Source of the DNA: Perkinsela sp. CCAP 1560/9
Taxonomy: Eukaryota > Protista > Euglenozoa: Kinetoplastea
Assembly (NCBI GenBank): GCA_965644495.1
Contig: CBFFSA010000003.1
Location: forward strand, 558,001-622,000
Length of the DNA: 64,000 nt
Reading direction: 5' to 3'
The translations under genes were made by a program, and so were the position numbers. The notes beneath the pieces were generated by a model, which was given only the letters and a program-made list of their open reading frames with translations, was not told where the DNA came from and searched no databases. Each line of letters opens with the position of its first letter. Position 1 is the stretch's first letter. This document shows positions 4,415-55,783 of the stretch, in pieces.

Positions 4415-5621
4415 GGGGAACAATTGCATATACAATATGCAATATTGTACTAAGTGGTATCGATCGCGCCTCATTCCTTTTTATGCACGTAGTAAGTGCA
4501 GCAATAGTAGTCCACATTGTAGTAATAGCAGTTATTGTGTACGTATTTAGATGGTTCTTTGAAACACTTTCGATAATAATATCGATTACCACTAGGCTGA
4601 GCGGCAGCATAGCTAAAATATGCTGTGTACAATACACATTCTCAGCTCTAGATTTGTTTTTTTTTGATCTTGTGCTCATTACTACCCCTAGAGTCCCTGT
4701 ATTTTTCATTTATCTATATCATTTTCTGTTAAACGCATGCCTATTTCTTTTGAAACATCGAAGGTCGAGAGGATCAGGCCCGATGATACCATGGAATGCC
4801 TCACATTGCTTGGCAGGAGCGCTCGGTTCCGCGCAGGTTACCGCAACGTTCAGGTATGATTTTCGATGGAAAAGATGCGGTTCTTGCTTTGTGGGAACAG
4901 GCTTAGATGGGAGGCGGCTGCTCGATCTGTCATATTCTGCCTATCATACATGTAGGTGATTCTTCATGTGTAATACCTTTTCTTTTCCTCCTTGGATAGA
5001 GTTGTCCGGTGGTAACAGAACGAAACATCAAACCACTAGGACAATGTCCACTGACAGGCGTGTGGAGGCCGACCCTCACTGAGTTGGTAATAACTTACGA
5101 CCGTGTTGCCGAGCTACTCATATTTCTTTAACAATTTCCTACCTACTTAACCCATTTGAGTACCACTAACATTTGTGGTACTTGTGTGCATTTGTGTAAC
5201 TTATCCCAGGGGCAGAGAAGTCATTGATACAGTCATGGATACAGCTTCTCTACCTTGTTGCTATTTAACCTTAGTTCATCTTTTCTTTCCCCAGCAAACC
5301 CACGGCTGCCTCGACAATCGTGTTCACCTTCATTTTGGTCCCTACGTGGTTAAGGGAGTAGGGCGTCGCCTGAGTAGAAAGGAACTTGGAACGGGAACGA
5401 TTGGTACGAAAAACGGTGGTATGCAAAATACTTCCGAAATCGGCCAGAATACATGACCTGTAGGGGGGGGGTACATATTGTTGCCTATCACTGTAGACTG
5501 GATGGCCCAGACTTGTGTAGCTTGAATAATCTTGAAGCGTATGTACCTGTATAGTAGTACCTGTATACTTTGCTTTTGTAAGAAAATAAGGTTTCGAATA
5601 TTTTTTCCCTGATACAAAGAT

Positions 5622-36834: not shown

Positions 36835-37380
36835 ACACGGAATCCCTGTATCACAACGTTTGAAAGAAATTTGAGGCAAGTCATTGATATTCCAATTGCC
36901 GAAAGGCCCATTGCGTGTACCAAACTATGAAAAGATGCGTCTCAAGATACGAGGTTGAAAACCAACGATCTGTGCCATCATAAAAACGTGTCTCTATAAT
37001 TTGAACGCTTAGATGAATATGAAAGGAAAATGCACATACAAATATATAATGTTACAATGCCTCGCGGGATTGTCTTCTAAGGGATATGTTTCTGTGAGGG
37101 TTAGAACTAACAGAAACTAATCTCTTGATCATTCGTGTACTTGCTCGTAATAATTGAAATACTATTAAAGTTGGAGAAATATTTTCTCCAATATTGCGCC
37201 AACGTATTTTGACACCGTCAGATCTCATAATGTTGTGCTACAATTGTTTCACATGTAATATTATGAGGGCTTGCTGTGTCCAACACTTGCCCGGTTGGAC
37301 CGACCCACATCTTGCAATATCTGACCATAATAATTTCAATAAATATCACTTTCACTTACGACTCATTTATTCAGTATATA

Positions 37381-38303
37381 AACCCCCCACAGCGAAAAGT
37401 CACCCCCCTCTAACTTTTCAGCCAAGTGTCCGTTTGAGCTCATTTTTGTTGCATTTTGCTGTTCCCAACATAAAGACTATGCGCGTTATAGCATGAAACC
37501 AAGGCTCTCAAATGCGTGCATCCGATAGATGGATTATCACTTTCTTCACATTTTTCAAGAGGCCAATTTCTCACACTTTAACAAATTATATCTTCTCCTC
37601 CCATGAGAATTCTAATTATTTTTGTCCGTTTTTGCTGATTTTTGTTGCAAACGAGAGATCTCGTTCTCCTAGCAAAGATCTTTGCCGCTATTTTTTAATA
37701 TTGACCCACTTGTGCCCCCTGGCCGCGGAGTGTTTGTTTTCCTAAATTAGTGTGGTATGACGATGCAAAAAAATCAAACCTAAAAACAATTTTCTTCTTC
37801 AGTTTCTAAAATGATCTAAAAATGGTGGGAACGTGTAGATCTCAGAATTTTGAACGAGAAAATGATATCTTAACCCCCTTAGGCCCCTTCAAGCAAAAAC
37901 TAAAGGGGACAGCTTAAAAAAGGTGATTTATCACCGTTTCAAGAAAGAACCAATCAAAGACAAATATTCCACCACGTGACAAATTGAATGTTTGTTATCT
38001 GTTTTTGATCATTTTTGTTGCAATCGAGAGAGCTCGTTCCCCTAGCGAAGATCTGTGACACCATTTTCATGTTGACCCCCTTCCCCCCCTGGTCGAGGAA
38101 CATGAGATTTTTTGGGTAATATTGGCATGACTATGTAAAAACGTCGTTAAAAAAATGAGTTTTAATTTGTTATCTGTGAAGAGGTCTAAAAACAGCGGGA
38201 ACGTGCAGATCTCAAAATTTTGAACGAAAAAGTGGTGCCGCAACCCCCCTAAGCCTCGTTGTACAAAAAAAAGAGGGGGGTGACTTATTCGTTGCGGGGG
38301 GTT
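37381..38303. mobile_element. Non-autonomous TIR element A with TA TSD and internal ~250-bp diverged duplication
   Basis: TA|AACCCCCCACAGCGAAAAGTCACCCCCCTCT vs AGAGGGGGGTGACTTATTCGTTGCGGGGGGTT|TA; ~37640-37890 resembles ~38012-38260. Confidence 0.85.
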
Positions 38304-38719
38304 TATTGTCACCCCCCCCCTTTATACTTCAGGGGGGTCAACCCCCCCTTTATACTTCCGTTTTCATCCAGATGAAAAATCAGCCCCCTCCCTTTATACT
38401 TCCGGTCCCAAAAAAACTGCGCCGCTTCGCGGCGCAGTTTTTTTTAATAACAATTTTCTACTTTTTTTTATATTAAACGTTAGAGGTGTGTGTAGACATA
38501 TTGCTAGATATACATTTAAATTATTTGCCGTATTTTTTCCCATGTCAATACTCGCAGTGGGTTAAGCTTTATCCCCCTCTTCATCGCGTTCGGCCTCCCA
38601 ACGAAATAGTGGTTTCAAGCGCGGAGCCTGCGACATTACCTGTGTCCGTCGGTTTACCCCAGGGAGGAAAGAACCCAACAATGTAGGAGAAGTTGAATGT
38701 GTCTCATTCGAGTAGAAGT

Positions 38720-39010
38720 GCTCCACAAATAAGCGAGAAGTACGGCGTCTGATCTCGAACCATCCGCTCCATCCGGAAAAATGGTGTCGGATTTTTCCAG
38801 AAAAAAGTAAATCTATCGTAGTTGCAAGCGCGATGGGGTTTGCACAAGAACAAACATGTCGAGATGCGAAAAAATTAACGAACTCCTCCTTAGCGAACTG
38901 GGCGGGATGACAGCTAGCGCGGACATGCGCCTGCTGCAGCAAAGGCGAATGTACCTCGTTTCAAAGACTGTCCCATGAAGCTTCTAATGGTAGATCGTCC
39001 CGACACGTAT
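38720..39010 (+). pseudogene. Remnant of pogo/CENP-B-type transposase N-terminal DNA-binding domains
   Basis: Manual translation gives QISEKYGV*SRTIRSIRKN (HTH-psq/CENP-B-like) and, downstream, EASNGRSSRH (cf. ASNGW..RF..RH); stops and frameshifts present. Confidence 0.6.
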
Positions 39011-39102
39011 TCACTACAGCGTAATAAACAGCGTATGTTGATTGTGTGCAAGAGGAACACGGAAGCCAACATTATGCCCTGCATGTTTGGAGATTGGATA
39101 AA

Positions 39103-39590
39103 GATACAGTTTCTGTACCTTGTTGGTACATTTTCCTTTAGTTCATCTTTTCTTTCCCCGGCAACGGGCATAGTCTTACTGTTATATGCCCGTTGCCGGC
39201 CGGCACTAAGGCCGAAACTGTCCCTCTTTCTCGGCGAAGTAGCGGACGTGCTTCCACCCCATCACCCCTCCCCGGCTCACTCTTTGAGTGAGTTTTCTTC
39301 CCTCCCCGGCTTTCTTCCCTTCGCGCCCTTTCCTTCCCGGGGAGCCATGCGCCATGGTGGCCTCCCTTGAGGACCACTGGGCGTGGCTCTGCCTCGTCTT
39401 ATCGCGAGGCAGCGGTCGGTTGCAGTGCGCCCCTCCGGCTGCGTAAAGAGAGGGCGAGTTACCTGGACCCCCTCTACCGACATAGTCCGTGCTAATCCCC
39501 TTGGTGCGACATCCGTCATTACGGATTGTGCCGATGATATCGGCTGTCGCATCAAGGGCTGTATCTCTGCGCCAACGAGCGTATGAACAT
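39103..39590 (+). ncRNA. Spliced-leader RNA-like locus 1 with structured tail
   Basis: GATACAGTTTCTGTACCTTGTTG|GTAC matches the 3' half of the kinetoplastid SL exon and the GT donor (39126); hairpins follow. 5' and 3' ends are uncertain. Confidence 0.7.
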
Positions 39591-39910
39591 CAAAACATTG
39601 ATTTTTAGCTAGAATAATAGGAAACGAGCGCCGCTAAGCGGCGCATTTTTTTTGCCCCTTTTTCAAAAATATTCGTTTCGCGGATTTTTCAAAAAATCAG
39701 ACCCCCCCCCTTTATACTTCCGAAAGTGAGACCCCCCGTTTATACTTCCAAAAGTACCGAAACCGGCGGAAGTTTAAAGGGGGGGGTGACAGTATTTTTC
39801 AAAGCGTCACTAATTAGTGAAATTCTATCTCCCTGACGATTAAAAGAAGTCTCTGATACTCTAGCAGCGCTACACATCTTCTGAGAGCAAATACTTTCTT
39901 TTCTTTTTTA

Positions 39911-40059
39911 TAAAGGGGGGGCTCGTCTATTGTTGGCAATGGGTCAAAAAAATCTAAATTAATTAAATGTCAACAATAACCGATTTCCAACAATAGGTGA
40001 TTTTATTAGTTTGCCAACAGTAGATGATTGCCAACAATAGACGTACCCCCCCCCCTTTA
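39911..40059. mobile_element. Short MITE (~150 bp) with ~30-bp TIRs
   Basis: TAAAGGGGGGGCTCGTCTATTGTTGGCAAT ... ATTGCCAACAATAGACGTACCCCCCCCCCTTTA; internal CCAACAATAG-like repeats; related solo end at ~5461. Confidence 0.85.
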
Positions 40060-55327: not shown

Positions 55328-55783
55328 GTCTCGATAAGATATTTCAATAAGACTTAAAATCTTAAAATAAGACTTAAAATCTTTTATTTTATCAATGAAG
55401 GCCATCCAACGACGACTGATCTATGCAACCACAGAACGTTTTTGTAATTCTATTTAGATGTCCGTTAACTTTGAGAAAGGTGTATAGAGGAAATAGTTAA
55501 AATGTTTACTTAAGGGAACAGCGTAATTTATCTAATGGTCCTGAACATGAAGTAAGATCTAAGTTAGATATTGCTTGTTAGATCATTTTTTGATAGTCAT
55601 GCACTAAAAGTGCAGAGATTAATCTTGTTAGATCATCTAGCAAGAGTAAAAGGGGCAATATATAGATTATGTAGACTCACTTTTTCATCAATCCTCGATT
55701 TTGCAAATTTCATTATAACGGACATTCTTGACCTCTTTCTACATGAATCAAGGTTCATTTTCTTTTGATGCTAATTTTATTTA

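Follow-up and report, generated by a model that had tools for sequence, protein, structure and literature searches.

A probable spliced-leader-headed retroposon family in Perkinsela and its insertion into a DNA-transposon relic

The DNA analysed here is a 64,000-nt window of the 21-Mb genome of Perkinsela sp. CCAP 1560/9 (contig CBFFSA010000003.1, positions 558,001 to 622,000), in which positions 39100-39596 are probably a copy of a young, non-autonomous and non-coding retroposon of the non-long terminal repeat (non-LTR) type. Its head is a relic of the spliced leader (SL), most likely derived from trans-spliced RNA, and the copy was inserted secondarily into a miniature inverted-repeat transposable element (MITE), hereafter element B. 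An earlier note on this DNA, made from the letters alone, had described an SL RNA-like locus with a long structured tail, and had proposed either that a DNA transposon had captured or mobilised a dispersed SL RNA gene of unusual length, or an SL-headed, retroposed RNA resembling a short interspersed element (SINE). The latter proposal agrees with the data, as the locus belongs to a dispersed, non-coding and structured repeat, whose SL heads are ragged and whose 3′ end follows the design seen in R2-like long interspersed elements (LINEs).

A genome search with positions 39050-39650 (393 first-look candidates) returned 78 matching pieces, which are distributed over many contigs and are mostly 92-98% identical, only a few being more divergent. 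The 3′-terminal 30-mer of the retroposon occurs 60 times in the genome at up to three mismatches, and the 3′-terminal 159 nt yield 113 candidates. The locus is thus not unique, but one of at least 60 repeat members. The part common to the copies extends from (AT)AAAGATACAG to GAACATCAAAA(C). Copies range from 500 to 580 bp; the usual copy measures about 577 bp, due to a 77-bp internal tandem duplication, and the window copy is the short form of about 500 bp, which has no such duplication. In the divergent sub-families L036/L027b, L037/L040 and L004b/L054, the first ~290 nt and the last ~90 nt are common to all, and the middle differs. The 33 copies that were examined lie in many unrelated contexts, such as leucine-rich repeat (LRR) genes, a (TG)n tract and LINE tails. 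Near-identical dispersed copies with defined 3′ ends and variable 5′ ends, as found here, are expected of a LINE-dependent retroposon.

Coding capacity was not apparent, as no Pfam match was obtained with the open frames of the retroposon, and the 77-bp duplication and 1-nt indels shift the reading frames between copies. No tRNA gene was found in the retroposon, and no Rfam family reached the gathering score in the window; relaxed Rfam thresholds gave matches at chance level only, and no ribozyme similar to that of hepatitis delta virus (HDV) was detected. A classical SINE transcribed by RNA polymerase III (Pol III) was rejected, both on these grounds and because the head is a fragment of an SL exon, transcribed by RNA polymerase II (Pol II).

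The genome of the window features long arrays of same-strand, intron-less open reading frames (ORFs), which encode a mitochondrial-type RNA polymerase, EF-G, an HDAC and RRM proteins, among others. Along with the SL core ACAGTTTCTGTAC and an SL intron opening with GTATGAGAAGC, these arrays point to a kinetoplastid-like genome. Three proteins of the window gave no match in an exact-sequence look-up, and a 19-mer of the SL appears in none of the papers searched. The window copy is in sense orientation relative to the surrounding plus-strand gene array. True SL RNA genes were identified at ~661 kb of contig C1, as two tandem 297-bp units (L038/L039, C1:659819-663149) adjoined by a 5S ribosomal RNA (rRNA) gene (99 bits). 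The exon, AACTTTAACGATAAAGATACAGTTTCTGTACCTTGTTG, is 38 nt long, starting with AACTTTAACG and ending with CCTTGTTG; the intron opens with GTATGAGAAGC (GTATGAGAAGCTTCG), and further on contains a GC-rich stem-loop and a T-run. SL RNA genes produce, intron included, RNAs of about 110 nt in total, and their arrays frequently have 5S rRNA genes as neighbours. Eight instances of the exon-intron joint were counted in the assembly, in the two tandem units and in six singletons. The solitary joints (CTGTACCTTGTTGGTATGAGAAGC) map to C1:410098, C2:801598, C20:10940, C25:23931, C49:34382 and C86:12043, and may represent either retroposed whole SL RNAs or dispersed SL genes. Each 297-bp unit also contains, on the opposite strand, a segment that looks tRNA-like, and a ~200-bp internally deleted fragment of the retroposon family adjoins the SL array in opposite orientation.

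The window carries SL nt 13-38 exactly, or nt 10-38 if a preceding GAT is included, and the suggestion that this sequence is the species' own leader is borne out. The relic bases owned by the insert are 39100-39125 (AAAG...TTGTTG). GAT at 39097-39099 matches SL nt 10-12, yet it is present in the empty target too, and is a 3-nt junction microhomology. The 27-mer that had drawn attention to the locus lies where it had been placed, at 39103-39129; the window holds it just once, and 100 shuffles did not produce it. Downstream of TTGTTG the window reads GTACATTTTCCTTTAGTTCATC, which has only GTA in common with the true intron, and the GTAC formerly taken for a splice donor consists of the first bases of a 16-nt segment, GTACATTTTCCTTTAG. 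The true SL intron of Perkinsela starts with GTATGAG, not GTAC, and so does that of T. cruzi. A stem had also been drawn across the supposed donor. GTACC at 39117-39121 can indeed pair with GGTAC at 39125-39129, but this stem is not conserved among copies, 16 of which lack the segment altogether.

The remaining 470 nt of the locus show no relation to the true gene L038, stem-loop and T-run included, beyond the GTA. At the other end, the SL lacks its first 9-12 nt, the cap-4 positions among them, as the earlier note had remarked of the canonical 5′ end; the sequence found upstream is MITE sequence that is also present in empty sites. The locus is, in addition, a solitary insertion rather than a tandem array. 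In all defining features open to a test on DNA, from the 5′ end of the exon to the intron, the array and the length, the locus departs from an SL RNA gene, and this candidate was rejected.

Element B, which measures about 990 bp without the insert, has terminal inverted repeats (TIRs) starting with (C/T)TGTCACCCCCCC, sub-terminal repeats and TA flanks. The inverted repeats at 38306-39792 enclose the retroposon, in agreement with the location originally assigned to it. At least eight other copies of element B, 86-94% identical and ~965-990 bp in length, agree with it in their ends and TA flanks, and all are without the retroposon. Empty sites read ...GGAGATTAGAT-G-ATTGATTTTTAGC, where the window reads ...GGAGATTGGAT, then the insert (AAAGATACAG...CATCAAAAC), then ATTGATTTTTAGC. 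The insertion site is ...TTAGAT/G/ATTGA... (here and below, slashes mark joints), and one target base, G, was lost. As eight copies of element B are empty, the retroposon hit the MITE, and is not cargo of it. None of the other 32 retroposon copies examined lies inside element B.

TIRs and the TA target-site duplication typical of Tc1/mariner/pogo elements are present in the window copy of element B and in the eight other copies. At least 59 matches to DDE_1, the pogo-type transposase domain, were found in the genome (best E = 3e-17), several of which are in open frames of 400-770 aa; one match is 2 kb from another copy of element B on contig C2, a proximity known by coordinates only. A decayed transposase helix-turn-helix had been reported upstream of the SL-like sequence, but no Pfam domain was found in any open frame piece of element B. 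Element B thus resembles Tc1/mariner/pogo MITEs in TIRs, TA flanks, length of about 1 kb, multiple copies and lack of an intact ORF, and differs from them in that no transposase remnant was detected. The label "pogo-type" is plausible for this TA-flanked MITE. In the literature searched, Merlin is the only DNA transposon described in kinetoplastids (PMC8101967), and no DNA transposons are reported in trypanosomatids (PMC12278014).

Other relics surround element B. A TIR element of ~0.93 kb, with ends ATAAACCCCCC..., abuts it at 37378-38303, and a 138-bp MITE with 26-nt TIRs (GGGGGGGCTCGTCTATTGTTGGCAAT) is found at 39915-40052; the intergenic region is a nest of DNA-transposon relics.

The origin of the head was examined by comparing joints across copies. 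The SL match ranges from 23 to 33 nt in 33 independent copies, with a mode of 27-29 nt, and reaches at least 34 nt in one further copy. Each of the 27 exact matches to the body start directly follows the final G of the SL, and no retroposon copy devoid of the SL was found in the assembly. The GT following the exon is kept in 27 of 33 copies and is changed or lost, without compensation, in the others; variants of this region include GGTAAA, GGTATA, GGCACA, loss of the G, or absence of GTAC.

Three features of the joints bear on trans-splicing. In 16 genome copies, which belong to at least two sub-families (L006 and L036 are among them), the whole GTAC...TTTAG segment is missing, and the SL is joined straight to TTCATC. 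Tandem relics, in which no more than 6 nt separate a complete SL 3′ end from another, truncated SL downstream, occur at 14 sites (for instance, C1:4017995 and C17:79173); eight of the 14 restart at T23 and two at A17, just after the sole two AGs inside the SL. Finally, among the loci examined, 12 of about 20 LINE-type heads start at C3, the third nucleotide of the SL. The 5′ end of the SL carries the modified cap-4 nucleotides, and a reverse transcriptase halting at the first of these would give such heads. Because of the 16 TTTAG joints, the 10 AG-placed tandem joints and the C3 heads of LINEs, SL heads most likely derive from trans-spliced RNA, as far as can be judged from joints in genomic DNA.

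Stuttered partial SL pieces were observed just 5′ of the heads of L004, L013, L016, L025, L031 and L046-L050. Examples are AAAGATACAGTTT(C/A)TTACAAT, present three times in L004, ACTAATATACTATA, present five times in L031, and ACTTTAACGATAAGATACA, which precedes a 36-nt head in L046-L050. Within L041-L061, at least nine LINE families have AATTATTT(T/C)C directly after the SL relic, the downstream sequences being different; heads in this group are mostly 36 nt long and start from SL nt 3.

The features identified at the locus are as follows.

39097-39125, plus strand: spliced-leader relic, SL nt 10-38, matching exactly the exon of the true SL RNA gene (L038/L039); the empty sites also bear on its limits.
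39126-39141, plus strand: 16-nt pyrimidine-rich segment GTACATTTTCCTTTAG, ending in a putative AG trans-splice acceptor, as suggested by the 16 genome copies with the SL joined straight to TTCATC after this AG.
39100-39596, plus strand: whole retroposon copy, short form, 497 bp, with boundaries from the empty sites and the genome search.
39156-39203, plus strand: 5′ long hairpin with a 15-16-bp stem, containing a 15-bp perfect inverted repeat at 39158-39199 and two compensatory pairs.
39214-39384, plus strand: central helices at 39214-39254, 39274-39294, 39302-39344 and 39349-39384, from RNAalifold with pair counts.
39499-39557, plus strand: 3′ three-way junction, made of an outer stem and two hairpins, with seven compensatory outer-stem pairs across sub-families.
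39562-39596, plus strand: 3′ terminal module, consisting of ATCTC, a hairpin and then TGAACATCAAAAC, a design common to the ends of the R2-like LINEs L079, L085 and L011.
38306-39792, no strand assigned: host element B, a non-autonomous TIR element (MITE), recognised by its inverted repeats, TA flanks at 38304-38305 and 39793-39794, and other copies.

The plus strand folds with an energy of -209 kcal/mol (z = -9.4 versus shuffles). An RNAalifold analysis of 22 copies from four sub-families predicted 110 pairs, in which 96.6% of the cells are canonical; on the minus strand, the same helices are 89.5% canonical, as 194 G-U cells become C-A. Compensatory changes on both sides affect 26 pairs, versus 2-13 when partners are slid by 1-3 columns, a count to be read with the caveat that the structure was derived from the same sequences. 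Compensatory support was obtained for the 5′ hairpin, the helices at 39302-39344 and 39349-39384, the three-way junction and the terminal hairpin at 39568-39583. In the 5′ hairpin, the two compensated pairs (CG to UA and CG to AU) are found in a divergent sub-family. The terminal hairpin, which pairs TGCGC with GCGTA in the window copy and has GCGCA in most copies, shows one GC to AU compensation within the retroposon families. The central helices have 91-98.5% canonical cells and many G-U pairs, on the plus strand only. The hairpins previously described at 39158-39199 and 39276-39292 were both recovered, as was the three-way junction placed at 39498-39558. A panhandle between the 5′ and 3′ ends (AGATACAG with CTGTATCT), which appeared in the single-sequence fold, was dropped since it is not kept in the divergent sub-families. 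According to these models, the hairpins and the three-way junction are real, conserved RNA elements of the plus strand.

More than 1000 first-look reverse transcriptase (RT) candidates were found in the genome. The RT-bearing elements L079, L085 and L011 end with ATCTC, a 5-7-bp hairpin, TGA and an A/T-rich tail, which is the design of the last 35 nt of the retroposon; the stems are different and covary. ATCTC-hairpin-TGA motifs number 15 in the loci examined, versus two in shuffled sequence. The best match of the L079 RT is Bombyx R2 (8gh6, E = 1.6e-30), and the C-terminal ORF of L011 matches the R2 endonuclease region (E = 4.4e-6). On contig C10, a 27/30 match to the 3′ 30-mer is preceded, 2 kb upstream and in the same orientation, by an RT match in a 1612-aa open frame, a pair known by coordinates only. 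At C1:394-407 kb, 3′ ends recur at a spacing of 5.2 kb, likewise as judged by coordinates. At the other end of the retroposon, the 27 nt that come after the SL match the 5′ untranslated region (UTR) of the LINE L059 at ~78% identity. These likenesses suggest that the autonomous partner is an R2-like LINE of the same genome, the best candidate being the one on C10 (C10:470297-473044).

Six copies (L018, L021, L022, L027, L029 and L030) break LRR-type ORFs at one position of the repeat unit (...DL..LP..L..L/), though the LRR assignment is weak (LRRNT_2, 22.7 bits; LRR_1 below the Pfam threshold), and the 5′ flanks of many copies end with T-N-GAT, like the MITE target. This pattern fits a sequence-selective endonuclease combined with joining by microhomology, which would also be the reason why heads cluster at SL nt 10-13.

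Head-to-tail pairs were also observed (L004, L027, L079, L011; C10:473015-473161). In some, a copy of another sub-family comes immediately after a retroposon, with the joint CATCAAAA/GATACAG. In others, the start of a retroposon coincides with the tail of an R2-like LINE or falls within it, as in the (TG)n tail of the LINE in L011. Head-to-tail pairs are either chimeras generated by template jumping or the result of a preference for element tails.

Two further traces of the family are present in the window. An older SL-headed copy at 5238-5300, on the plus strand, features GATACAGCTTCTCTACCTTGTTG, with two mismatches to the SL, followed by CTATTTAACCTTAGTTCATCTTTTCTTTCCCC, which is similar to the L054 sub-family; similarity decays beyond this point. 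On the minus strand, at 55573-55636, a 38-bp insertion (55586-55623) corresponds to the terminal module alone (ATTAATCTC, the hairpin TGCAC/GTGCA and TGACTATCAAAAA). A perfect direct repeat of 13 bp, ATGATCTAACAAG, borders it on both sides, and R1, a covariance model of the 3′ 110 nt of the retroposon, matches it at 27.9 bits. This insertion looks like a severely 5′-truncated retroposition with a target-site duplication.

The data can be accommodated by the following model. The RNA of the element would be trans-spliced like any kinetoplastid Pol II transcript, gaining the 38-nt SL. The plus-strand RNA would fold into the conserved helices and end in the ATCTC-hairpin-TGA-A/T-rich tail module, which the RT and endonuclease of an R2-like LINE would recognise. 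The complete RNA, leader included, would then be copied into the nicked target by target-primed reverse transcription. Closure of the 5′ junction by microhomology would give rise to ragged heads of 23-34 nt, GAT being the microhomology in the window copy, where the insertion occurred in a pre-existing TA-flanked MITE with the loss of one base. Mobilisation in trans by a given LINE, trans-splicing of the element RNA and transmission of the TTG/GTAC joint are the parts of the model that we infer.

Several observations weigh against this model. The main joint, TTG/GTAC, shows no AG in any copy, and an SL-less master carrying AG/GTACATTTTCC (AG/GTAC) was sought in the assembly and not found. Because an AG is lacking, simple trans-splicing of daughter RNAs cannot regenerate TTG/GTAC, or the SL/AATTATTTTC joint of LINEs. 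None of the retroposon heads in the 33 loci reaches SL nt 3, as opposed to most LINE heads. At the 3′ end, the likeness between LINEs and the retroposon is limited to the design of the last ~35 nt, and model R1 had no match in the 3′ UTRs of L079, L085 and L011, its matches being confined to retroposon copies, the 38-bp truncated window copy and one more 3′ end, in L035. Lastly, comparison with the eight empty sites revealed no target-site duplication around the window copy. Variable junctions are usual for R2-type elements.

We also consider, as a tentative possibility, a stronger version of the model, in which the SL relic and the polypyrimidine-AG stretch form a working 5′ module. Read-through RNA of host polycistrons would be trans-spliced in or just after the relic, and thereby freed and capped; trans-splicing would replace the HDV-like ribozyme of R2 and L1Tc elements and be obligatory for retrotransposition, and the head would stay single through a further mechanism, for example homology-guided template switching onto SL-bearing RNA.

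Two other origins of the head dispense with trans-splicing of the element RNA, and each appears improbable. A founder element might have inserted into an SL RNA gene after the GTA, whereupon the SL promoter would have produced an RNA made of SL exon, GTA and element, ancestral to all copies. Such an event would explain why the joint has no AG, why its first three bases are those of the true intron and why every copy has the relic; moreover, SLACS, CZAR and CRE elements inhabit SL genes and use the SL promoter (PMC12278014), and the deleted retroposon fragment adjoins the SL array at C1:661 kb. This fragment is, however, in opposite orientation, and none of the eight exon-intron junctions corresponds to a copy with full SL and GTAC in an SL array. 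Several lineages read TTGTTG/TAC rather than GTAC, and the homologous LINE 5′ UTRs read SL/AATTATTTTC, so that the SL junction is older than the GTA coincidence, for which the chance is 1 in 64. The alternative that the LINE RT jumped from the 5′ end of the element RNA to the 3′ end of a free SL exon, or to an SL-bearing RNA, draws on the ability of the R2 RT to jump templates in vitro. It would account for joints without AG (TTG/GTAC, TTG/TAC and TTG/ATTTTCC, as well as CCCC/TTTTCTTCC in a LINE), for the stuttered SL pieces upstream of heads (L004, L013, L016, L046-L050) and for the head-to-tail LINE-retroposon and retroposon-retroposon chimeras (L004, L027, L079). In contrast, the alternative joints at AG acceptors, which offer a test (16 after TTTAG, and 10 of 14 inside the relic), are a signature of splicing, and a free SL exon is short-lived.

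The readings nearest to the gene captured by a transposon fare worse still. It is very improbable that the locus works as a dispersed SL RNA gene, or as another trans-splicing donor to which a long structured tail is attached: the 26-29 nt that match the 3′ part of the SL exactly, the GT that follows them in most copies and the strong structure of the downstream RNA are what such a gene would exhibit, but SL nt 1-9/12, with the cap-4 positions, and the region upstream of the true gene are missing, the likeness to the intron stops at GTA, with no shared stem-loop or T-run, several copies have altered or lost the GT with no compensating change, and copies behave as insertions with ragged 5′ ends. 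Slighter still are the chances that the SL-like element is cargo of a DNA transposon and spreads along with element B, since the location between the TIRs speaks for it but the emptiness of all eight other full copies of element B, and the position of the 32 other examined retroposon copies outside this element, speak against it. Capture or mobilisation of a long SL RNA gene by a DNA transposon is not supported, given the missing SL 5′ end, the GTA-only intron match and the empty copies, and mobile trans-splicing donors are unsupported. The connection between trans-splicing and mobile DNA drawn in the earlier note is real, but its direction is reversed: RNA of the mobile element appears to gain the SL and supplies none.

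SL sequences in retroposed DNA are known from dinoflagellates, in which relict SLs mark the 5′ end of "recycled" processed cDNAs (PMC5585692, PMC6050394, PMC12014239). The two systems are alike in having the SL in DNA at the 5′ end of a retroposed sequence. Serial truncated relics, which in dinoflagellates arise from AG splicing inside an old SL, have a counterpart in the 10 Perkinsela joints at SL nt 16/17 and 22/23. Dinoflagellate relics involve host protein-coding genes and a 22-nt SL; in Perkinsela, LINEs and their non-coding partners are involved, and mostly carry a single, 5′-ragged relic. Among kinetoplastids, SLACS, CZAR and CRE1-2 are LINEs with a restriction-like endonuclease (RLE) that are specific for SL RNA genes (PMC12278014, PMC4728078). 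Kinetoplastid host, R2-like (RLE-type) nature and a tie to the SL are common ground, and their insertion point, SL nt 11/12, is near most head starts. However, these elements lie within SL genes, with half of the SL on either side, whereas the Perkinsela family is headed by the 3′ part of the SL and is scattered over LRR genes, MITEs, microsatellites and LINE tails. What the locus shares with a kinetoplastid SL RNA gene is the 26-29 nt of exon sequence and the GT after them.

The family is similar to RIME (partner of ingi), NARTc (partner of L1Tc), SIDER and R2 SIDE derivatives, which are likewise short and non-coding; such elements have 5′ and 3′ terminal sequence or structure in common with an autonomous LINE, which presumably mobilises them in trans. 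In trypanosomatids, these partners open with the 77-nt Pr77 promoter/ribozyme and yield unspliced transcripts (PMC3383444, PMC1874656); in the Perkinsela family, by contrast, an SL relic comes first, with a polypyrimidine-AG acceptor after it. As judged from sequence organisation, the family resembles RIME, NARTc and R2-SIDE elements rather than a Pol III SINE. No report of SL-headed mobile elements in kinetoplastids was found in the literature searched, which is no proof of novelty.

The SL-headed family yields the SL sequence of the species straight from DNA, and marks and dates retroposition events. The window provides a clean comparison of filled and empty sites, in which insertion junctions are fixed to the base, and the genome features TA-flanked MITEs and many pogo-type matches, where the kinetoplastid literature found describes Merlin only. 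SL heads would be a sign that transcripts of the elements enter the trans-splicing pathway. In turn, polypyrimidine-AG acceptors and SL-like sequences scattered in polycistronic units could alter the mRNA processing of neighbouring genes.

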